DNA of 64,000 bases. Source: Ophelia neglecta. Lineage: Eukaryota. The stretch spans positions 24,676,001 to 24,740,000 of the forward strand of contig OZ260661.1 in the NCBI GenBank assembly GCA_965285935.1, written 5' to 3'. A program made the translations under genes and the position numbers. Of this stretch, positions 15,927 through 36,357 are shown one piece after another (position 1 is the stretch's first letter; each line of letters opens with the position of its first letter). The notes under the pieces are model-generated. The model had not been told where the DNA came from, made no database searches, and saw only the letters and a list, made by a program, of their open reading frames with translations.

Positions 15927-16383
15927 TAACCTCAAAAATGTTGTTAATGAATTTTTTATACCTTAATCCTTTTTGTGTAATTACTGATAATGTTTAAGGT
16001 TATCAAATAATTTACCTGTTCCAGATTTTAGCCTATTTCATGCAAGTATACTTTGTATAAATCTGAAGAAAAAAAAACTAGTGTGTGTTTGGAATTTCAG
16101 ATAAACTTGAACACTGGGTTCCTGAACTGTGGCGGTGTCTGCCGATGGCAGAATGGGCAAACTGCTTTGAATGGCTGTGGACAATGTAATGAAATCAACA
16201 ACATAAATCATGAAAAATTGGAACAGAAGGTACTCAACATTTGAAATGACACTGTTATTTATTAATGCACAACATATTTATTTGGTTCAATTAATATTAC
16301 ATTTCAAGCAACTCGCTCATTAGGTACAAGGTAGAAGTTTGAATTTACTTGACAATGTCCTTTAACAAAGCTTTCTTTTGCAG

Positions 16384-17241
16384 ATATCATACCAGAAGTA
16401 TTTTGTCTTGAATCCGATAAAGCTGGGAACGTCAAATCTACAAATGCAATGTGTTAACTCAATTTCATCACTAAATCTTCTTCTAAGTAGTGATTCTTTA
16501 ATTGCTGGCAATGTCAGAAATATCCACACAAGTAGTATACACACAAGTAGTATGTCAGAAAATGGGGATGATGAAGAGGTTGTTAAGACAGAGGTTTCAC
16601 AGAATCTTGGTGTGATCCTCACTACAAAAAGCCATGTGTGCAATATATGTGGAAAGAAATTCTTAACTGCTAGAGGGTTGAAAGTCCATCTGTGCACTCA
16701 TAGCCAGGAGATGCCTAACATATGTGATACGTGCGGAAAGGGGTTCTTTACATCGACAGAATTGGATATCCACCGTATCGGGCACAGTAAGGAGGAGAGA
16801 CCATACAAATGTAGCTACTGTGGTAAAGGCTTCAAAACAGCATCTCATCTGGAGAGCCACCTGCGTAAACACACAGGAGAGAGACCTTACTCATGTTCTG
16901 TCTGTGGAGAAACCTTCCCAAGTTACGTCCAGCTCAAGAGGCATGGATACAAACACAGCGGGGAGAAACCGCATCAGTGTGAAAAATGTGGGCAGAGATT
17001 TCTAACTGCACAGGAACTGATCTACCATCGGAGAGTGCATACGGGGGAAAGACCATTTGTGTGTCGCCAGTGTGGAAAGGCTTTCAAGCAGCATAGTCAT
17101 CTATATCACCACCAGAGGGTGCACAGCTCAGAGAGGCCTTTTGTCTGTGACATCTGTGGCAATAAGTATAAAAACAAAGGTACCCTGGATCGTCACAAGA
17201 ACAAGGTCCATAGTGGAGATATTTTAGAGGTGGAAGTTTAA
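16384..17241 (+). CDS. C2H2 zinc-finger protein, 7 tandem fingers (terminal exon)
   Basis: Seven C-x2-C...H-x3/4-H fingers with HTGERP/HSGEKP linkers. Acceptor ttttgcAG at 16383; an in-frame phase-0 upstream exon ending 16229 (CAGAAG|GTACTC) is plausible; alternative start ATG 16552; AATAAA at ~17361. Confidence 0.9.
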   Translation: MSYQKYFVLNPIKLGTSNLQMQCVNSISSLNLLLSSDSLIAGNVRNIHTSSIHTSSMSENGDDEEVVKTEVSQNLGVILTTKSHVCNICGKKFLTARGLKVHLCTHSQEMPNICDTCGKGFFTSTELDIHRIGHSKEERPYKCSYCGKGFKTASHLESHLRKHTGERPYSCSVCGETFPSYVQLKRHGYKHSGEKPHQCEKCGQRFLTAQELIYHRRVHTGERPFVCRQCGKAFKQHSHLYHHQRVHSSERPFVCDICGNKYKNKGTLDRHKNKVHSGDILEVEV

Positions 17242-24283: not shown

Positions 24284-27200
24284 ATGGAATTAGCAGAGCA
24301 GTTTATCCGTCAGATCACTAAGGACACCCAGTCCGAAGACCGCCTGGTCCTAGCTCAAACCCTGCTGAGAGATGTCTCCCAGCAGACCTCAGATGGAGTA
24401 CAGTATGACGGCGACACCGTATCAGAGATTGTGAGGGTTCTGCTCAGGGTAACCCTTGATTCTGATTACAATACGTCCAAACTGAGGGAGTGGCTCCTGA
24501 GCCAGGAGGTCAAGGATGTGGTGTTTGGACTCACCGCGGGCCCGGGGACAGCATCAGCCGTTCTGCGGGGGATGCTAATAGCTGTCGAGGAAAAAGGGGT
24601 CGGGTTTGAAGACTTTATAACATGGTGCGGAGAGTTGGCAGGGACATGGTTTGTGAGCACGAATGGCAAAGTGGCCCCGACGAGCCCGGGCTTTATATTC
24701 TGTCTGTTTGAATTTAGATACCTGTCCGGCGACCGACAGGAGGATGCCTGTGGACATCGAAAGTCATCATTCGCGGACAGAGACAGACACCTTCTCCCCC
24801 TGGTGGTGGCGGCTCTCCATACAGAGACAGGGGAGTCCATCAATAAGAGTGACCGGGAAGGACACACGGCTCTCCACATAGCTTCATCTGTCAGCAGGCT
24901 CCCCCAAGTCACCAGGGCCCTGTTGGGACACCCCGACATAGATGTCAATGTCAGAGACAACAAGGGGAGAATCCCACTAGCTCGCCTTGTCGAACGTTCA
25001 GACCTGGACGATGATGAATCTCCGTCAGCTCATTACCTCCTGGAACATCCAAGTACAAATGTAACCATATTAGACAACCAGAATAAAACGGTATTGGATC
25101 ATTGTTTGGACAATCTCGGTGGCCCACTGGAGTCTGTGAAAGTGGCTGTACAGCTGATTGGCTTGATATGTGAGCACCCCACAGCGACCCCGGATATGAT
25201 CACACTAGGAGTGGAGAGACTAACAAGACTAGAAGTCCCTGAAAGTCTACGAGCCATGTATAATGATGTTATAGTTAAGCTTGCCGCAAACACTAAATTC
25301 AATATCAACACATTTCTGAGAGACGGGAAGACGATTGGTCATTTAGCCGCCTCTCAGAAGAAGGGCGATATTGTAATGAAACTCATAGATATCACAGGAT
25401 TTGACCCTAAAATCCCCGACAGTCTGGGTAACACTACACTCTACTACGTCTGCGCTAATCTTCCAACAGAGTCAGCAATTGCCGTACTCGACCACTCAAA
25501 CGTTACCTGGGACTTTGCTCATAGGAACAAGGGGGAGCAGACGGTCCTGGACTACTACGAACGACTGCCGGATAGCAAGAGAGACCCCTTGTTGTTAGCT
25601 ATACTGGAGAAACGAGTGGGCCGTGTGACAGTCAACGTAGGACGGCAAGGTATGTGGTACATGTATGATATCAGTTTTAAAGTATTAGTTATAGAATGGG
25701 TTTCTGGAGATACTCAGATGAGATAAACATTGAAGCGACAGCCCTTGTCGTTCTGTGTTGCCTATAGCCGAGATATCGGGGGTGAGGACTAGTGGGATTT
25801 TAATTATATAACGTAGTGGAGAAATATCGTAGGAGGGAGAACATTGTCAGGGAATCACCAGATGATTGAGCCTGAGAACATTCCCTGTAAAAATACGCTA
25901 CTCACCTCTGATAATTCCTTTATAATTCTTTCGCACACTAATATGCTCCCCTATTCCGTAAGCCTGTTTGTCCAGGGCTGGGGACTTCTTGAAGAATATC
26001 ATGACAGTTTGGTGCGGTAAAACCCTGTGTTATACTCCACGTAGGAGATGATTTCCATCGATGGACTCGAGATTGGCTTATAATTAGTAATGTTTGCATT
26101 GCTTTTTGAAAATTATACGGCCTAAAAGCAAACAGTAGGAAGGTTCGATAGTTTCCTATCCGTAGGGGCCTTCCATACTGCAGTTGCAAGGCCGGGGGTA
26201 TATCGGGTTTAGGCTTAGGTTGGTATAGGAGGAGTTGGGAGGACCTTCCAACCAGCAGACACATAACATGTATATCTATCAAAGGAGTGGCCTTCTTTAT
26301 AATATCGAGTGTGAATAAGTTACGTTTCAAGTTCGTGTTTTTCATGATCGTATGGTGTCTTGTTATAATAATAATGTGGCACGCATTCCCGTTTCTACAC
26401 ATACCACGTGTACTGTCGTGCGCTCAGGAGATTGTGCGAATAGCTGTGTGGGCGGTGGGAGTTGGATACATCAAGACCCGCTGCTCTATGACCTTGTCCT
26501 CATGACAGAGACAGCATCTCCTCTCCGTGAGCCCATGCATCCCTCCAGCTACCACCTTACACGTCCGTATTTAATGGCGCCAGGAGTCGTGAATATTCAC
26601 CAGCAGTGAACCATTATAAATATAATAATGTCTTTCTCTATTTACATATATACTTATCTGTAGCGGCCCAGAGACAGGTTCCGGAAGTTGCTGTTTATGT
26701 TCCGATTAGACCAATCCAATGGACCCCCCACGCCCCCGGCCAAGGCAGCGGGACGCCGGTAAAAGTCCTACCAGCAACGCCCGACATTATGACCAGGAAA
26801 CTGGACATGGTCTCTCAAGATCAGGTAAACGCTGTTCGTCATATGACAAAGCGCGATAGTAAATATACAAATATATTTATATATTGTTTGTTTTCATTTA
26901 ATAAGAAAATCCATGTTCCCACACCTAATCCGCATGTTTAAAAGTTTGCCACCCCACCAGGTGTACCCTATGGATAATGCCGCTAAGGGGCGCTGTTGTA
27001 TCATATCCGTGCCTACCTTTGAGGTTCCATGGCTGATTGATCTTCCCGGCTATCACAACGATAGTCAGAGATTGGGAGAGCTGTGGTCAGGTTTGGGATT
27101 TGAAGTCACCTTACCAAGTTGCCATGGCGACAGATATCTCACTGCCCAGGTACTGATTCACCGCTATATGGATTATATATTTAATAAATTACAGTGTGTT

Positions 27201-28822
27201 ATTGAGGCTTATTGACCTGATCGAAACATTCAGAAATGTATACAGTGCGAATGCGAAAGCCTCGATTTCTTCCTGGGTCTGTCAGGCCATGAAGCCTCTA
27301 TACAACACTGTTATTGCCTAAATACCTTGCAGGAGATAGAAAAGTCGGTGGAGGAGTTTTCTCAGAGTCTGTCCGGGTCAGACCAGTGTGTTGTCCTAGC
27401 TTTACTCAGTCACGGTGGCGAAGGCTTCATCTACGGCAGCGACGGTAATAAGGTTAATTTGGAGAGGCTGTTCAGACACTTGGATAACGAAAGATGTCCT
27501 GTCATGGCGGGAAAACCTAAAGTGGTCGTCATCCAAGCCTGTGCCGGGGTGAGTATACGTCATTGCCTCGTATAGTAAGTACAGGGAAACCTGTGAATTA
27601 AGACCACCCAAGGGACTAGAAAATGCTTGTCTGATTTTTGAGGTGATCTGTTTAAACAGGCTATTTAACATAGAATGTATACATTATGGTTCTCATATAA
27701 GTGGTCTGAATTGACAGGTGGTCTGATTATAGAGGTGGCCTTTAAGGCAGGTTTCACTGTATAACGATATACAAATATTCCATGACATCTCATACAACGA
27801 TTACATTTGTTTATCAAATTTCTGATTTACCTTATTTTACTAAAGTAGATCTGAAAACAGTACACATTAAATAACCTTACACACTTCTCCCAATATTGAC
27901 CACCTGTTCCCCACAGTCGGCCACTGACTTGGGGGTCACCGCAGGTCACAGATTCTCTCCGGCTGTAATGGCAGCAGATCCGAGACTTGACCTTCCAACA
28001 ATGTCGGATTTTATTATCTGCTCACCTTCGCTCGCAGGTAACTGCCTAGGAATTATTCTTTTTTATTGTTGCAATTCGAATCCCAGAATATTTCGAGAAA
28101 GCCACTGTAATGCAGTTAAAAGCGTTTTATACCGGTAACCAACCTGGCTCACTGGGGATTATCGTATGTCTTTTCTGCCGATTCCAGGGCTGGCTTCATA
28201 TGTGTATAACACTCCAGGACGAGGGAGTGTTTTCCTCGAAGCCTTTGTGGATATCTTTAGTCAGCGCGCCAAGGAAGACGATATTCACACTCTCATGACA
28301 TGGGTAGGTTCACAGAGTCATAGGGTTCAATGTCATATGATCGTATACAGTGAAACCTGCCTTAAAGACCAGCTCTATATTAAGACCAACTGTCAATTCA
28401 GACCACTAATATAAAGACCATATCATACACTTTCAATGTATAACATCCTGTGTAAACAGACCACCTTTATAATCAGACATGTATTTTCAGGTCCCAACGA
28501 TATGATCAAAACTTTTGTGCGAAACAAGAATATACTAGATATTTCTTCTTAATATGCTTGAGTATTTCAGGTTAACCACAAGGTGTCGAAGGCCAGGACA
28601 CTGGTTGCACATCCTGGAGGAAACTCGGCTAATTGCAAACAGATGTCTCGCATTGAGAGCTGCTTAACCAAGCTCCTGTACTTCTATCCCGGCACCGAAC
28701 AAAATCCCGACAAGAACGGCCGCCAGGAAAAAGCACAAATTATTAATAAGAACATTAAATATATCCTATGGATAGTATCATCTATAATGATGGCCATTTT
28801 ACTTCATAAAATTTGGAACTAA
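24284..28822 (+). CDS. Ankyrin-repeat/caspase (peptidase C14A) fusion protein, 806 aa, with a hydrophobic C-terminal tail
   Basis: Seven GT-AG exons splice in frame without stops: 24284-25649, 26664-26824, 26961-27149, 27333-27548, 27917-28037, 28188-28303, 28571-28822 (2421 nt). Ankyrin motifs DREGHTALHIA, DVNVRDNKGRIPL, DGKTIGHLAA, DSLGNTTLYY. Caspase motifs VYPM..KGRCCII, LGFEV, LLSHG (His 27411), GKPKVVVIQACAG (Cys 27540), PTMSDF, GSVFL, KQM...LTKLLYFYP. AATAAA at 28872. Confidence 0.9.
27582..27759. mobile_element. Tc1/mariner-pogo-type MITE in a caspase intron
   Basis: TA-CAGGGAAACCTG...CAGGTTTCACTG-TA; same family as 57373-57550. Confidence 0.85.
28348..28497. mobile_element. Truncated copy of the same MITE, opposite orientation
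   Basis: TA-CAGTGAAACCTGCCTTAAAGACC...; second TIR absent. Confidence 0.7.
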
Positions 28823-30842
28823 TGTAATTTATTATGCCTGGGTTATTTGATCAACAATTAATGTGTTATCAAATAAATACATTGTAAGTTTCTCCTGCAA
28901 TTGCCCTCCGTGCGGTATATGTAAAATTACAAATCTGATGTATTGTTGACCAATGGTAATGTTTGTTGCGTCAGTGTCTGACTACATAACGTTATATTTT
29001 TTCAATGTCCACGGCCGACCTGCAACTTTTACCCCATTGGGAATCTGATCCGTATAAGTTTTGATTATAAATAAAAATGATAAAGTAATAAAAGGATTGA
29101 TATGATTTTGTTTTCATTGGTTTTGTGTTAATGTAAAAAAAATTACACTGTGCGTCTTGGGGTCCAATTAGTGTCAAACGGCCTTGCAACAAAATCTTAT
29201 AATGACGCCCGATACATCAACTGACCCTTAATGATGATGCAAGACACCAAATAGTGAAACATGACATTAAACTGACGTTTATAATAAAAATGAATTGCAT
29301 TGAAAATAGAATGCCTTGATCTAGGATTATGTATTAATATGCATTAGAGGAAATATATTACCTACTCTAAGAGCGTACACAGATATTGCTAGGTTAAAGG
29401 AGAGGCTTTTGTTTTTTACTACGCTATTATCGGGAGCGGTCATTTCACTTACATATTGAAAGGGTGAAAACAGCTTCCGAAAGCGGAAAAAAGTTTAATA
29501 AGTTAGAGCAAGCAGCTATATGTTTTTCACATAAAGGATATTGAGGTATATATTATAATACTTATATAAGGGCGACAGAAAAGTGATCTAGTATTGGATG
29601 GCTTTAGGTGTCTGGTTTTATCAAAAGCGCCTTCTTGTAACAATAGAATAAAAATAAAGCAAAATGATGCTCTCCCTGATTCACACATTCCTAGTTAACC
29701 AATCAAAACTAAAGGAGAACTCTGGTTCATTAGAACAAAAAAAAATTTCATTTGTTGAATCGCAAATTTTGTTGATAAGTTTGGGAGTCTGTTTTTGTTC
29801 AATCCAACACAATCTGAAAGTAATTTGACGTCTTTCACAAAAATACGAGTCAGGTGTGGGTGAAGATTATGTTTTACTAACGGCTTTCTAAATATTATTT
29901 TTGGCTGCTGGTTCCTGATGATTTCAGACTGATATATTGGACTAATCTCGACTAATGGTTTACCTTTGTCTACCGTCTATCCATTCCCGTTTTTATCGAC
30001 CCACCTCTCATTCTGTTTGCCAGAATACATGGCGGGAATGCCTTATGTGCGGAAACTTTTAATTGAAGAGAATTTTCATCAGCATACCATATGTACTGGA
30101 AGGCAAGCCATTTCAGTCTTTGTTATATGCAAGTACAGCACATGGCCGTGGGATGCCAACAAGGATTCCCTATGCAGACCTTGTTAAGCTCTGAGCAGTT
30201 CTAAATGGGTGCTGGGATAGATCTCAGTGCGCTAACCACTCCTTATGAAGTACAATTACCGAAAGTTAACTCACCTTTTTCTATTATTATAAATTCACTT
30301 AGTTATGTATACAATTGATTATATTCTGTTGCTCGTCTGGTCAAAATGAATTATAATTTTGTAAAGTATTATTCCGATGGTATTGAGTTATATATATAAT
30401 AATATTTATATAAAGGCGACAGAAAAGTGATCTAGTATTGGATTGCCTCTTGGAACGTATCAAATAATGATCGCATTGCGCGGCGCAAAAGCCTGACGTC
30501 TCTGACAGACACAGCAAACTACCATAGACTCTGAAACATGTACGTATTAATACTTGTAAAGATTAACAAAGAAATGAAACAATCAAAGTTCACAAAAGCC
30601 TGACCAAATGCCAACACGACAGTATTAGGACACTTTAGTAGTGTGAGACATCCGGTCCTCCTTTGTCCTAAAACCAAACTTTGGATATGGATTATGACTT
30701 GTGGAATATTATGCTTATCAAACAACGACATGTCAACCCATTTAGAAATATTGGAAGGATATTTATGCACAAAGGGTACCGTATTGGTAAGTTTTCATAC
30801 TAATGGACTTTTTTCTTGTAATTACCATAAAATCATCACACC

Positions 30843-32432
30843 ATGCAACCAAATTTTACAAATATCCCACCATTTCCTCTTGCCATATCGAGCCATGATT
30901 GGTCAAATCTTATCCTGTTGGGATCCAAGATGGCGGAAGCCGAACTGGACACGTCGATAGGAGAGGAAAGAAATTTACAGATTATTCCAGGAGCGAACCC
31001 GATTCTTCACCAAATACTATGTGGTTTGGACAACAAAAGTGGTTCCGAAGTGATAGAAGATATTTTGCATGAAGTGGATTTACAAGTTTTGGCAGAAAAC
31101 AGACTTTTGATATCGAACGTGGCTGTGACGCAGCATTCTACACTCTGTACGGCTGAAAAGGTAAACATTGACGGTAAGCTTTTCAAACTCAAAGAAAGAC
31201 GGAGCGAGAAAGCTTTAGCAGAGGATATTATTAACCTTTTCCTGTATGTGTCAAACTATACAGAAGAATTTCCAAAAGATATATATAAAGACAACAGGAA
31301 AATTCCCATTATATCGGCCACAAAAACACCCAAATTGGCGAAACGTAACACCACTATGAAAGATTATACCATGAATATGACGGAGGTGTTTCAATACATA
31401 AAGGAAAGCAAAGAACGGGATCAGAAACAGGGTGATTTGGTCACATCCGTTAGATTGGAAATAGAAGGACAGATTCAAACACTTATGAATAGAGTGCAAA
31501 AACTTGAAGAAGAAAATGCGACTCTCAGAAAAATCATTTCAGACATTACTGGGCCCGAAAATCTAGTAGCAGCAAGCTGTCAGCAGAGTAATAAGCCCGA
31601 TGAAAATGCTGTACGCTCAAGTGAAACGCAAACTACCTTTGTGTTAAACGACAAAGTTAATGATGCGAAAAGTGACACGGGTGCACAACGTCAAACAAGC
31701 TTAGAAGGTGTGACCCCCTCCGATAACAATAAGTTGTTACCGGGCCAAATCTCTCAGAAGGCTAACGATCAGCTGTTTCAGGACACGACCCCTAAGTCAA
31801 CAAGTGCCTATGGCCCAGGTGACTTCCCTCCCTTAAGCCTCACCCGAGACCAGCGATCGCCGCTTGAAACAACTGGCAATGATTCATGGGAGATGCGAAT
31901 GAGTCTCAGAACTCAGCGGGACCGACAGCGTCGAATCGAAAGAGAACAAAATTTGAACTCTGATCGGGGGAAAAACTCCCAGATGATGAACCAGCCCAGA
32001 ACTAAACCGCTACAAGGACGTACATGGGTCACAGGAGAAAGTGTATATGTAAAGAACATCGCCGTAGACTATGACGAAACAGATGCTTCGATAGCTCGCG
32101 ACGTGCGAGGACATGCACAGGACAAAGGGTTGACAATCATGTCCTGTAGAGTTATCCGTAACAGATACAATGACACTTCCGTGGGCTGTAAACTATTTGT
32201 CCCCAAAGACCAAGTGTGTAAAGCCCTAGGGCCGGGTTTTTGGCCAAATGGCATATCATGTCGCAGGTGGGAGCAAAGAAATTCTGGATATCGACCCCGT
32301 GGAAATAACTTTTTTGATCGTGATGGGAACTGGCGGGACGATACTGCTGACTACGGGGAAAATACGGCATATCACAGTTGGGGTTATAGTGAAGGTTACG
32401 ATCACGGCGAGAACCCTTACTTCTCCAATTGA
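30843..32432 (+). CDS. LINE ORF1 protein (coiled coil + C-terminal RRM-like domain)
   Basis: 529-aa ORF 109 bp upstream of ORF2; heptads LEIEGQIQTLMNRVQKLEEENATL; VYVKNI...GCKLFVP...FWPNGISCRRW. A better-context ATG lies at 30930. Confidence 0.8.
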   Translation: MQPNFTNIPPFPLAISSHDWSNLILLGSKMAEAELDTSIGEERNLQIIPGANPILHQILCGLDNKSGSEVIEDILHEVDLQVLAENRLLISNVAVTQHSTLCTAEKVNIDGKLFKLKERRSEKALAEDIINLFLYVSNYTEEFPKDIYKDNRKIPIISATKTPKLAKRNTTMKDYTMNMTEVFQYIKESKERDQKQGDLVTSVRLEIEGQIQTLMNRVQKLEEENATLRKIISDITGPENLVAASCQQSNKPDENAVRSSETQTTFVLNDKVNDAKSDTGAQRQTSLEGVTPSDNNKLLPGQISQKANDQLFQDTTPKSTSAYGPGDFPPLSLTRDQRSPLETTGNDSWEMRMSLRTQRDRQRRIEREQNLNSDRGKNSQMMNQPRTKPLQGRTWVTGESVYVKNIAVDYDETDASIARDVRGHAQDKGLTIMSCRVIRNRYNDTSVGCKLFVPKDQVCKALGPGFWPNGISCRRWEQRNSGYRPRGNNFFDRDGNWRDDTADYGENTAYHSWGYSEGYDHGENPYFSN

Positions 32433-32541: not shown

Positions 32542-35500
32542 ATGGACAGTATGTTCAAGGTAGCTACGTTAAACGCAAGGGGATTGGGTGATATTAAAAA
32601 AAGGAGGGACATATTTGAGTATTTGAGAAAGCAAAATTGTAATTTATATTGTATTCAAGATTTTCACTGTACCACAAAACTTGAAAACCAGTACGAGAAA
32701 GAGTGGGGTTATAAGTGTATTTTTAGCTCAGTCTCCTCATGTAGTAGAGGTGTTGCATTGCTCTTTAACAACAATTTTGAATTCCAAATTCATTGCACAA
32801 AAATAGACAAAGAAGGGAATTATGTTGCGTTAGACATCACTATTGAAGGCACTAGGTTAACGTTAATCACATTGTATGGGCCAAATAGAGACACTCCGGG
32901 GTTTTATTTAAATATATCCAATATTGTTAATGAATTAGAAAATGCTACTGTTATCATATGCGGAGACTGGAACTTAGTGAGAGATCAATCAAAAGACACT
33001 AAGTATTACAGAAACGAAAATAATTTAAAGTCCAGAGAGGTTGTCGAAAATATGTGCGAATTGTTTAACTTATATGATCCCTGGCGATCATTGTACCCTG
33101 ATACCAGAAGGTATACATGGCGTCAAAAACGCCCGATAAAATTTGCTAGGCTGGACTTCTTTTTAGTAACTGAAGATTTGCTTAATCTAACCGATAGGGT
33201 GGATATTCTCCCCTCCTATCGATCCGATCACTCCATGGTCGTTGCTGACTTTGAATTAAAGACGCAAAGCAGGGGTAGGGGATTTTGGAAACTGAATACA
33301 TCTCTATTGAAAGACCCGGTATACATAGAAAAAGAAAAGGGAATTATTAGGGACACTATTAGCAAATATGCAGCCCCAGGGGAAGACCTTTCTAAAAAGG
33401 ATATTAAGTTAAATATATCCGACCAACTCTTCTTCGAAATGGTTAAATTAGATGTAAGAGGTTTTTCTATTTCGTATGCGGTGGCTAAGAAAAAGGAGAG
33501 AGAGCGTAAAGAAAAGCAGCTGGAAGAGAAAATACTTACCCTAGAGGCCAAATTAACCTCTGCGACCATTTCACAGTCAAATAAGGAAATCAACTCCACT
33601 ATAGAGTCAATTGATATTGTAAAGTCAGAATTGGAAAATATGAGACAGGAAAGAGTAAGAGGCATATTATTACGGGCGAAATCTCGATGGCATGAAGAAG
33701 GGGAGAAAGCGACAAAATATTTCTGCAGCCTGGAAAAGCGGAACTACACCGCCAAACTTATATCTAAAGTAAATGACAACGGTAGTGAAATTACTGATCC
33801 GAAATCAGTTTTAGGAAAGGTTGAAGAATTCTACAAATCATTGTACTCCTCCAAGTGTTCCAATTTAAAACATTTAGATTATTTTTTAAACAACTTTAAT
33901 GTGAAGAAAATTAATGATGCACAGAACCAAATGTGCGAAAGCCCATTTCAGGAATCTGAGCTTAAAGAAGCAATAAAGAACAATGCTAACGGTAAAACCC
34001 CGGGCTCTGATGGATTTCCCGTTGAGTTTTACAAGATGTTTTGGAATGAAATAGGTTACTTTTTATTGAGATCTATTAATAATGCCTTCCTTACCAAAGA
34101 ATTATCTCCCATTCAAAAACAGGGGGTCATAACTTGTTTACCAAAAGAGGATAAGCCTAGGCAGTATTTGAAAAACTGGCGTCCCATAACATTACTGAAC
34201 GTTGATTATAAAATTATATCCTCCGTTTTAGCTAATAGAATGAAGATTCCATTACAAGACATCATAGGAGAAAACCAAAAAGGCTTCCTCCAGGAAAGAT
34301 TTATAGGCGAAAACACTAGATTAGTATATGATATTATAGATATCTTACAAAGTAGACACCAAACAGCTCTACTCCTACTCGTTGACTTTGAAAAGGCGTT
34401 TGATTCAATCGAGTGGAGCTGTATTGAAAAGGTATTGGTCGCTTATGACTTCGGAGAAAATTTCTTAGCCTGGTTTAATTTACTTTACAGAAATTCAGTT
34501 AGCTGCGTGATTAACAATGGGTTTCCATCACAGTTCTTCAGTCTTGGCAGGGGATGTCGTCAAGGTGACCCCATATCACCGTACTTGTTTATATTAGCTA
34601 TAGAGCCGCTGGCTCAAGCTCTTAAAAATGACAAACAGGTGGTTGGCATTAGATTAGAGGGTTATGAATTTCTCTTAGGTCAGTACGCGGATGACACCTT
34701 CCTGCTCTTGGACGGGTCACCTCAGTCTCTTAGGGCGGCAATGAATAATTTTATAAAGTTTGAGAGCACGTCTGGGCTCAGAATTAATATTGATAAGACT
34801 CAGGCGGTATGGGTAGGGCACAACTCGCACCTACAAAATAAAATGTGCGATGAAATCACGATCAAGTGGGTCGACTGTTTTAAGTTATTGGGAATAAAAT
34901 TCACTCAAAACTTAGATAATATTATTGAAATTAACCTAAGAGATAAAATTACGGAGACAAAAGCTCTTTTAAGGGCGTACTCGGGACGGACATTGAGCCT
35001 GTTAGGAAAAGTGACTGTGATAAAAACTTTGGCCATACCAAAACTGGTTCATGTCTTGTCCGTTCTGCCTCGTCCGTCAAAGTGTATTATTGATGAACTA
35101 AAAAAGTTGTATAATGAATTTCTATGGAATGGGGGGAGGTCAAAAATTAAACGGTCAGTTTTGTCTAAGTCATATGACAAAGGCGGTTTAAAATACACTG
35201 ATTTAGATGTATTTATTGATTCCTTGAAAATGTCTTGGGTGTATAGACATGTTAAATCAGCAAACTCTGAAGGTGGTTGGCAACAGCTACTCAATGTAAT
35301 TATTCCTCAGATGGATATGGGAAGCATATGGGATCTAGATGCCCCATCTTTAACTAATTTGTCAATGTATTTAAAGAATCCATTCTGGAGGCAAGTGTTA
35401 ACTGGCTGGAGTAAATTTGTAAATTTGTCAACAGAAGGGACTAATAATACTATAATGAATATGCCAATTTGGTCATCATGTTATATTAAAAACGAAAATC

Positions 35501-36357
35501 TGCAAGTACTGAAAAGAAAATTGTACTCTAATGGGTGTAAAATGTTTAGAGACTTGTTTGATGTAACGTCAGGTACTTTTTTGTCTTACAATGAGTTTAG
35601 AGTTAAATTTGATGTTGACATTAACTTCTTAGACTATGCAAGCTTAGTCGATAGTATACCACAGACTTGGAGACATCAGGATATAAATGTAAACAATAAC
35701 AATTCTCCTGCTTTGTCCAAGATATTGACGTGTAAAAAGGTGTCTTGTTTTGTGTATTGGGAATTTATTAACAGCGATACCACATCTGCAAAATGTAAGC
35801 AAAAATGGTCTGAGATTGTTACTTGTGAATTCGTAGGAAAAGACTGTGAAATGTTCTTCTTACTGCCTTTTCGTATATCTGTTGAAAGTAAACTAAGAGC
35901 TTTTCAATTTAAAATTTTGCATAGGGTTCTTCCGACAAATAGTTGGTTATACAAATGTAAAATTAAGGACTCGCCAAAATGTGATTTTTGTGGTACAGGG
36001 GTGGAGACCCTCGAACACCTTTTTTGTAACTGCCGTATAGTTCAGTCCTTATGGGAAGGCTTAAGTAACTGGTTGTGCCCTGTGGTAAGCCGTCTCCCAA
36101 TTGGAAATGTTAAATCTATTCTGTTAGGCTACGTAGATGATGATCCACATCTTGAGTTAATAAATATACTACTGATGGTGTCCAAAAGATATTTTTATGT
36201 GAGGAAGTGTAATTCTAAATCGGTTAAGCTGCTTGATCTGTTATATTTCATTAAACAGTATTACTATATAGAAAAGCATATTGGCAAGAATAACTGTGTA
36301 TTTTCGAAAAGACTAGAAAAATGGACACCAATCATAACAAAGTTGGAAGAATTGTAA
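32542..36357 (+). CDS. pol: LINE ORF2 protein: APE endonuclease + reverse transcriptase + C-terminal CCHC (zf-RVT)
   Basis: 1271 aa. EN motifs NARGL, GDWN, RLDFFL, SDH; Tx1-like GFWKLNTSLL and WHEEGEKATKYF; RT motifs WRPITLLNVDYK, DFEKAFD, GCRQGDPISP, YADD; CDFC...EHLFCNC. Confidence 0.97.
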   Translation: MDSMFKVATLNARGLGDIKKRRDIFEYLRKQNCNLYCIQDFHCTTKLENQYEKEWGYKCIFSSVSSCSRGVALLFNNNFEFQIHCTKIDKEGNYVALDITIEGTRLTLITLYGPNRDTPGFYLNISNIVNELENATVIICGDWNLVRDQSKDTKYYRNENNLKSREVVENMCELFNLYDPWRSLYPDTRRYTWRQKRPIKFARLDFFLVTEDLLNLTDRVDILPSYRSDHSMVVADFELKTQSRGRGFWKLNTSLLKDPVYIEKEKGIIRDTISKYAAPGEDLSKKDIKLNISDQLFFEMVKLDVRGFSISYAVAKKKERERKEKQLEEKILTLEAKLTSATISQSNKEINSTIESIDIVKSELENMRQERVRGILLRAKSRWHEEGEKATKYFCSLEKRNYTAKLISKVNDNGSEITDPKSVLGKVEEFYKSLYSSKCSNLKHLDYFLNNFNVKKINDAQNQMCESPFQESELKEAIKNNANGKTPGSDGFPVEFYKMFWNEIGYFLLRSINNAFLTKELSPIQKQGVITCLPKEDKPRQYLKNWRPITLLNVDYKIISSVLANRMKIPLQDIIGENQKGFLQERFIGENTRLVYDIIDILQSRHQTALLLLVDFEKAFDSIEWSCIEKVLVAYDFGENFLAWFNLLYRNSVSCVINNGFPSQFFSLGRGCRQGDPISPYLFILAIEPLAQALKNDKQVVGIRLEGYEFLLGQYADDTFLLLDGSPQSLRAAMNNFIKFESTSGLRINIDKTQAVWVGHNSHLQNKMCDEITIKWVDCFKLLGIKFTQNLDNIIEINLRDKITETKALLRAYSGRTLSLLGKVTVIKTLAIPKLVHVLSVLPRPSKCIIDELKKLYNEFLWNGGRSKIKRSVLSKSYDKGGLKYTDLDVFIDSLKMSWVYRHVKSANSEGGWQQLLNVIIPQMDMGSIWDLDAPSLTNLSMYLKNPFWRQVLTGWSKFVNLSTEGTNNTIMNMPIWSSCYIKNENLQVLKRKLYSNGCKMFRDLFDVTSGTFLSYNEFRVKFDVDINFLDYASLVDSIPQTWRHQDINVNNNNSPALSKILTCKKVSCFVYWEFINSDTTSAKCKQKWSEIVTCEFVGKDCEMFFLLPFRISVESKLRAFQFKILHRVLPTNSWLYKCKIKDSPKCDFCGTGVETLEHLFCNCRIVQSLWEGLSNWLCPVVSRLPIGNVKSILLGYVDDDPHLELINILLMVSKRYFYVRKCNSKSVKLLDLLYFIKQYYYIEKHIGKNNCVFSKRLEKWTPIITKLEEL

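Follow-up and report, generated by a model that had tools for sequence, protein, structure and literature searches.

The 64,000-nucleotide stretch of the Ophelia neglecta genome analysed here (assembly GCA_965285935.1, contig OZ260661.1, positions 24,676,001 to 24,740,000 of the forward strand), called the window below and numbered from its first letter, probably contains at positions 24284-28822 a real and intact gene of seven exons for a caspase of 806 residues whose prodomain is built from ankyrin repeats (ANK). It is highly likely that the ANK and the caspase parts belong to one fused gene, and at least 34 loci in the genome have an ANK exon followed by caspase exons. As modelled, the first 445 residues, all of them on one exon, form a rigid helical arm composed of a HEAT-like cap and two ankyrin clusters. 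Judged by its alignments, the window protein has the fold and the ancestry of a caspase without the canonical pocket for aspartate.

Structure of the gene

The 806 codons and the closing TAA (2421 nt) are joined from seven plus-strand exons that keep a single frame with no stop and no frameshift. All internal exon borders, read from the letters, are of the AG...GT type with compatible phases, which gives six GT-AG introns, and all splice sites are canonical. A sequence-only reading of the window had proposed this in-frame splicing to 806 residues, and its coordinates and gene model were found to be correct. The exons were queried singly against Pfam.

Exon 1 (24284-25649; residues 1-455 and the first base of codon 456) contains the start codon, encodes both the helical N-terminal domain and the ankyrin repeats, and ends at the phase 1 donor CAAG/GTATGT; it is based on Pfam Ank matches, on a structure model and on about 30 full-length paralogues in the genome. 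Exon 2 (26664-26824; residues 456-509) encodes the linker from the prodomain to p20, which is proline-rich as the sequence-only reading had described it. It has a counterpart in two paralogues (L013 and L014) at 52% identity, and a matching segment is present in an intronless copy and in a third paralogue, L015. The p20 subunit starts in exon 3 (26961-27149) and has its catalytic core in exon 4 (27333-27548). Exon 5 (27917-28037) covers the intersubunit linker and the start of p10, and exon 6 (28188-28303) the p10 core; exon 7 (28571-28822) completes p10 (...LYFYP), adds an extension of 40 residues and supplies the TAA. A poly(A) signal, AATAAA, was read from the sequence at 28872-28877 of the plus strand, 50 nt 3' of the stop codon.

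The ANK and caspase exons as one gene

The genome searched comprises 762 Mb in 223 contigs, and the family-wide statements made here derive from 12-13 copies read in detail together with coordinate tables. Exon 1 has about 30 full-length copies at 39-52% identity and many weaker ones besides, and the p20 exon (exon 4) gave 76 matches. Of the 30 best ANK-exon loci, 26 are followed in the same orientation by a complete p20 exon, at a distance of 2-11 kb; among the remaining four, two have a partial p20 exon, one stands beside an assembly gap and one is without p20. The same succession of ANK and p20 exons was seen at no fewer than eight weaker-matching loci on contig 1, and the exon order from 1 to 7 is preserved in all eight paralogues compared.

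The joining of the two parts is documented by two intronless copies in the same genome (L011:1537-2892 and L012:1611-3041, both on the minus strand), whose open reading frames (ORFs) of 451 and 476 residues extend in a single frame from the second ankyrin cluster over the linker to the end of the caspase domain. The genomic paralogues and the intronless copies agree up to the motif TPGSPG and then part exactly at the exon-1 donor, where the former enter an intron and the latter continue into exon 2. In this respect the intronless copies are a natural record of a spliced mRNA in which the ANK exon was connected to the caspase exons. The prediction of a single gene rather than two is thus well borne out by the 26 paired loci, the two one-frame copies and the conserved exon order, and the encoded polypeptide, with its ankyrin prodomain N-terminal to p20/p10, has the composition of an ANK caspase. 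Two contigs (L021 and L022) of an ENA assembly from another organism (ERZ25069296) each have an ANK ORF (32-35% identity) with caspase exons behind it in the same orientation, which by sequence places the family in at least one other organism.

The intronless copies are themselves damaged. With their ANK parts they extend over L011:1537-3636 (-) and L012:1611-3709 (-) on contig 1 (about 20.93 Mb and 20.78 Mb), are near-identical, lie 154 kb apart and share flanking sequence with unannotated ORFs. Both are truncated at the 5' end and have one break each in the ANK part, a TGA in L011 and a frameshift in L012. No poly(A) tail was seen after the stop of L011. They look like processed pseudogenes that were duplicated later, perhaps inside a mobile element.

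The prodomain

Exon 1 matches the Pfam family Ank_2 with an E-value of 6.5e-12 over residues 177-255, and Ank_4, Ank_5 and Ank also match. For exon 1, an AlphaFold2 model that drew on 19 family sequences reached a predicted local distance difference test score (pLDDT) of 91.7 and a predicted template modelling score (pTM) of 0.85, and runs from nine helices (residues 1-178) through three ankyrin-type helix pairs and a long helical hairpin to three more pairs. The N-terminal domain (24284-24817; residues 1-178) is predicted to be a HEAT/ARM-like helical repeat of nine helices, and the ankyrin region (24818-25618; residues 179-445) two clusters of about three repeats each with the hairpin (residues 303-334) between them. 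The two clusters with about six repeats in the sequence-only reading are found again in the modelled helix pairs. Foldseek matched the exon 1 model to designed ankyrin repeat proteins (DARPins), to the ankyrin repeat clusters of tankyrase and to ankyrin, and the ESM Atlas returned only generic ankyrin clusters for exon 1 alone.

Residues 1-178, for which the sequence-only reading had recognised no domain, were also modelled alone (AlphaFold2; pLDDT 90.4, pTM 0.87). Foldseek found no match to them in the PDB at E<=0.001, its best rows being designed helical repeats. In an exhaustive structural alignment designed helical repeats came first with a Z of 10.1, a value that by the aligner's own warning falls in the range commonly reached among helical repeats, followed by HEAT and TOG proteins; CARD, DED and DD were all absent from the top 50 structural matches. 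Structural matches in the ESM Atlas were HEAT-like only, with template modelling (TM) scores up to 0.52. A family profile run against PDB sequences matched ankyrin proteins only, all of them past profile position 160, and the Pfam search of the exons contained no CARD, DED or DD at E<=1. The sequence-only reading, which saw no CARD or DED prodomain, had suggested a structure prediction of the N-terminus as a way to look for a hidden death fold; what the prediction gave is a helical repeat. A cryptic death fold in residues 1-178 is ruled out by Pfam, Foldseek, the structural aligner, the Atlas and the PDB-sequence profile, and in the model this segment folds with confidence as a generic helical repeat. 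In most paralogues an in-frame stop is found 10-25 codons upstream of the conserved Met-Glu-Leu start, which makes a coding extension further upstream unlikely. No CARD, DED or other death fold was thus found ahead of p20, where a death-fold initiator caspase would have one.

The protease domain and its S1 pocket

Queried alone, exon 4 matches Peptidase_C14 (PF00656) with an E-value of 1.6e-15 and 57.9 bits, against a gathering cut-off of 21.4. Weak matches of exon 3 (profile positions 1-41) and exon 6 (positions 172-205) to the same family are collinear with the profile. Both catalytic motifs are present in exon 4, SHGG with His599 (27411-27413) and QACAG with Cys642 (27540-27542). The catalytic His is kept in 13 of 13 aligned copies and the QACxG motif with its Cys in 12 of them. 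The exception, from the other organism (L021:3356-3571), reads IDACRG for QACxG and AHGS for SHGG, so that by this alignment some members elsewhere appear to have altered the S1 glutamine as well.

For the comparison with solved structures, a contiguous intronless paralogue served as the query in place of the window's caspase domain. Its best solved relatives are caspase-8 chains, with an E-value of 5e-26 over about 259 residues of p20/p10 (paralogue residues 206-464). Caspase-6, CED-3, caspase-3 and caspase-2 follow more weakly (E 1e-14 to 1e-18). The p20 and p10 regions are collinear with the solved caspases, and the window exons are collinear with the paralogue. The resemblance of the segment before p20 to caspase-2, proposed in the sequence-only reading, did not hold through this paralogue: an affinity to caspase-2, at 2e-14, is ruled out by the match to caspase-8.

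In an alignment with six canonical caspases, the S1 arginine of p20 is replaced by Leu537 (27042-27044; L-x-G) and that of p10 by Val690 (28202-28204; SYV in place of S-F/W-R). The window protein thus has neither of the two arginines that bind the P1 aspartate (Arg179 and Arg341 in caspase-1 numbering). Both replacements occur in every copy aligned at those sites, and L-x-G is present in 12 of 12, including one from the other organism. The complete p20/p10 domain claimed from the sequence alone therefore stands with respect to the C14 match and to His599 and Cys642, but it is not a canonical one. To judge from the retained motifs, we favour an active protease. Since both residues that hold a P1 aspartate are replaced while the catalytic residues are kept, cleavage would probably occur after a residue other than aspartate; taken as a claim of its own about this protein, such a changed P1 specificity is evenly balanced.

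The 40-residue extension at the C-terminus is another particularity of the window copy. Paralogues match the first 40-56 residues of exon 7, no paralogue match goes past its residue 65, and the closest paralogue ends without the tail. The core of the tail (28760-28804; residues 787-801) consists of 15 hydrophobic residues, ends five residues from the C-terminus and is flanked by Lys on one side and His-Lys on the other, and it is short in comparison with a tail-anchor helix of about 17-22 residues. From its composition the stretch may be a membrane tail anchor; it could also be former 3' untranslated region (UTR) that is now read as coding.

Selection and recombination in the family

For the window gene and L013, which is its nearest relative in the caspase part, synonymous divergence (dS) comes to about 1.1 in each half, and the ratio of non-synonymous to synonymous divergence (dN/dS) is 0.35 in the ANK exon and 0.15 in the caspase exons (summed exon by exon). 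On these values purifying selection acts on both halves, with the ANK half evolving faster. An intact frame with such ratios at this dS argues that the window copy is not unconstrained. The window gene is an old, dispersed member of the family and stands by itself in a surrounding of retrotransposons, well away from the clusters of the family.

The ANK exon has a history different from that of the caspase exons. Between L016 (contig 5, 12.27 Mb) and L017 (contig 1, 127.99 Mb) dS is 0.87 in the ANK exon and 0.08 in the caspase exons, a discord that suggests either gene conversion or an exchange of exons between chromosomes. The ANK half of the intronless copy is 92% identical to L013/L014, and its caspase half is about 50% identical to L013/L014 and 70-81% identical to L015. 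On this sequence evidence, ANK exons have recombined with different caspase halves.

In a crude sliding-window scan of the family cluster on contig 5 (4.3-5.3 Mb), dN/dS (omega) reached about 0.9-1.1 within the first ankyrin cluster, and most of the remaining sequence gave 0.3-0.6; there is another short peak at residues 286-345, which rests on a very low proportion of synonymous differences (pS). These patterns fit a variable recognition arm on a conserved effector, without proving it.

Some members of the family have a structure of their own. A minisatellite with a unit of 66 bp (at least 19.5 copies, 95% matches) occupies L014:8709-9997 (contig 5, about 4.991 Mb) and is also found at L013:8130-8558. 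It lies in both cases in the intron before exon 6, and its unit consists of the exon-6 acceptor and the first 11 codons, so that each array forms a row of potential alternative 3' splice sites. The locus L020:5364-7163 (-) (contig 2, 11.62 Mb) has an ANK exon of 600 residues with an extra repeat block between the clusters, followed by caspase exons. At L007:721-2841 (-) (contig 5, 4.90 Mb) the ANK exon continues into a gap of the assembly (Ns), after which comes a long proline-rich frame of low complexity; no caspase exon was found near this ANK exon.

Relatives and comparison with known systems

A word-based search of public proteins with the ANK exon retrieved distant ANK proteins only. The best matches of an exhaustive search have about 34% identity and are ANK-only proteins of 326-566 residues, with no caspase domain in the 150 best. 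The caspase half has nine public matches, none with ANK. The best of these, P0157, is an uncharacterised turtle protein of 589 residues with apparently two tandem caspase domains. Two distant ANK relatives, P0135 and P0153, each carry a C-terminal CARD. A feature search of the ESM Atlas placed on top a eukaryotic Ank + Peptidase_C14 cluster (score 0.93; representative of 951 residues) in which the commonest phylum is Arthropoda, and returned bacterial clusters too; these are resemblances in a language model without an alignment, and we regard the arthropod and bacterial clusters as leads only.

ANK caspases have been described in parasitic platyhelminths and in the annelid Alitta virens (Krasovec et al., Genome Biol Evol 2024; PMC11463336), after having first been noted in Schistosoma (PMC11463336). 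The type was held to be unique to parasitic flatworms except for one A. virens gene, judged convergent; none was described in 23 molluscs, a brachiopod or free-living flatworms, and the species that have it possess single or few genes (PMC11463336). An earlier survey of bivalve caspases does not mention ankyrin. The idea of a novel, lineage-specific architecture therefore has to be given up, and the caveat added to it, that ANK caspases might already be catalogued, turned out to be justified. Like the published proteins, the window protein has an ankyrin prodomain before p20/p10 in place of a CARD or DED. The published tree makes the DED caspases the sister group of the ANK caspases (PMC11463336), and the window domain has caspase-8 as its nearest solved relative. 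The window gene differs from the flatworm and A. virens genes in the 178-residue helical cap, in the replaced S1 arginines and, for this copy, in the hydrophobic tail, and the family differs in its size, with dozens of loci instead of single or few genes per species. The HSP70 encoded in the genome, where a COX1 locus was located too, has 78-79% identity to its bivalve counterparts and 76-77% to those of an annelid, a chiton, gastropods and insects; taken alone, these flat values speak against a flatworm and for a probable lophotrochozoan, perhaps a mollusc, without a close relative among the named proteins. New here are the lineage, the family size, the helical cap, the shuffling of modules and the family-wide loss of the S1 arginines. 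The architecture is thereby shown outside parasitic flatworms, in a different animal lineage, and the intronless copies provide the joining of ANK and caspase in one transcript within the family.

The window protein resembles caspase-8 and other DED initiators in its long prodomain, in its SHG and QACxG motifs and in the shortness of the linker between the subunits, but it has no DEDs. Its Leu537 and Val690 stand at the positions of Arg260 and Arg413 of caspase-8. MALT1 and the metacaspases also combine the caspase fold and the His-Cys pair with a P1 residue other than aspartate and with N-terminal modules that are mixed or not death folds. Their acidic S1 pockets select Arg or Lys, whereas the window protein would present hydrophobic Leu and Val and is a true relative of the C14A caspases. 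The Ank + Peptidase_C14 clusters of the ESM Atlas have the same two-domain architecture, although bacterial C14 proteins are not strict caspases. A coupling of ankyrin repeats to caspase activation, as predicted for the window protein, is known from Caiap, an adaptor of fish inflammasomes that contains both CARD and ANK (PMC5662874); P0135 and P0153 are built in a similar way. In these proteins ANK reaches the caspase in trans through a CARD, whereas in the window protein it is fused to the protease.

Possible function and alternative explanations

Initiator caspases are normally activated through death-fold adaptors, and this is the logic of textbook apoptosis and inflammasome signalling. In the ANK caspases of O. 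neglecta, the ankyrin arm would probably take the role of the CARD or DED and bind a protein partner or a ligand. Such binding might bring two zymogens together and activate them by induced proximity, and the activated enzyme would then probably cut after a residue other than aspartate. The family size, the fast-evolving first ankyrin cluster and the recombined modules suit a diversified recognition role, which would most plausibly lie in immunity or cell death. A sensor for immunity or cell death, which is consistent with the expansion, the near-neutral first ankyrin cluster and the mixing of ANK and caspase parts, is a possibility that we hold tentatively, at somewhat below an even chance. 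The more specific idea of a germline repertoire of one-component sensor-proteases is unlikely as it stands. Here the variable ankyrin surface would recognise pathogen or danger proteins, binding would cluster and activate a protease that is derived from caspase-8 and cuts after residues other than aspartate, and recombination between ANK and caspase exons would yield new combinations. If it were true, it would mean an animal immune receptor class on a caspase scaffold in place of the scaffold of NLR or TLR proteins. If the family is active, it would represent a metazoan caspase lineage with a new specificity tied to a fast-evolving recognition arm, and would bear on how proteases of cell death and immunity gain new triggers.

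Several points weigh against an intact, active caspase with a recognition arm. The splicing of the window copy is deduced from paralogues and from frame conservation. The C-terminal tail occurs in the window copy only and lies within AT-rich sequence. In three paralogues the p10 motif reads SYVR, with an Arg directly after the Val, which makes the p10 position less certain there; in the window gene the residue after Val is Tyr, not Arg. Without its two S1 arginines the protein could also be weakened or have no proteolytic activity, instead of having gained a new specificity. The omega scan is a crude one, and the pairs summed in it are not independent. The searches run returned no public protein with this prodomain and a caspase. 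To our knowledge, no ANK caspase has a known partner, ligand, substrate or activity.

Such a non-proteolytic protein might be a crippled regulator that resembles FLIP, having lost substrate binding and pairing with true DED caspases, with the ankyrin arm setting where and when it acts. FLIP is a caspase-like pseudo-enzyme and a natural partner of caspase-8. The nearest solved relative of the family is indeed caspase-8, and both S1 arginines are replaced across the family. We nevertheless find a regulator of this kind unlikely: FLIP is without the catalytic Cys and His, while almost every copy here has retained the His of SHG and the Cys of QACxG with the S1 Gln over dS>1, dN/dS is 0.15 in the caspase exons, and 34 or more regulators for a few DED caspases would be unusual. 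More improbable still is a silent or decaying copy, intact by chance and functionless, in which the putative C-terminal anchor is read-through into a former 3' UTR. The isolated position of the copy among retrotransposons, distant from the family clusters, its unique and AT-rich tail and the visibly broken members of the family would fit such decay. An unconstrained copy would not keep ratios of 0.35 and 0.15 at a dS of about 1.1, however, and 806 codons free of stops and frameshifts, canonical splice sites and a poly(A) signal after the stop codon also speak for a maintained gene.

We consider it very improbable that the locus consists of two adjacent genes, an ankyrin-only ORF of 480 codons and a caspase with a short prodomain whose start would lie in exon 2 or in an unseen exon upstream. 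The exon-1 ORF continues for 25 codons beyond the donor to a stop and could stand alone, Met codons occur within exon 2, and public gene calls for the relatives are ANK-only proteins of 326-566 residues. These calls, however, look like predictions made ORF by ORF on uninterrupted frames in eukaryotic contigs, and both relatives checked (P0013 and P0007) have caspase exons behind the ANK ORF on their contig. Beyond the donor the ORF tails show no conservation between paralogues, in the intronless copies ANK passes in frame into caspase at exactly this point, and the ANK-p20 arrangement is kept at 26 of 30 loci.

Other features of the window

On the same strand, downstream of the ANK caspase gene, the window contains an intact non-LTR (long terminal repeat) retrotransposon ORF of 1271 residues with endonuclease, RVT_1 and zf-RVT (32542-36357). 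It is preceded by an ORF of 529 residues (30843-32432, plus strand) without a family match, possibly its ORF1. Upstream, a plus-strand ORF of 287 residues (16378-17241) encodes a run of C2H2 zinc fingers (zf-H2C2_2, E 3e-37); it could represent one exon of a zinc-finger gene that precedes the caspase.

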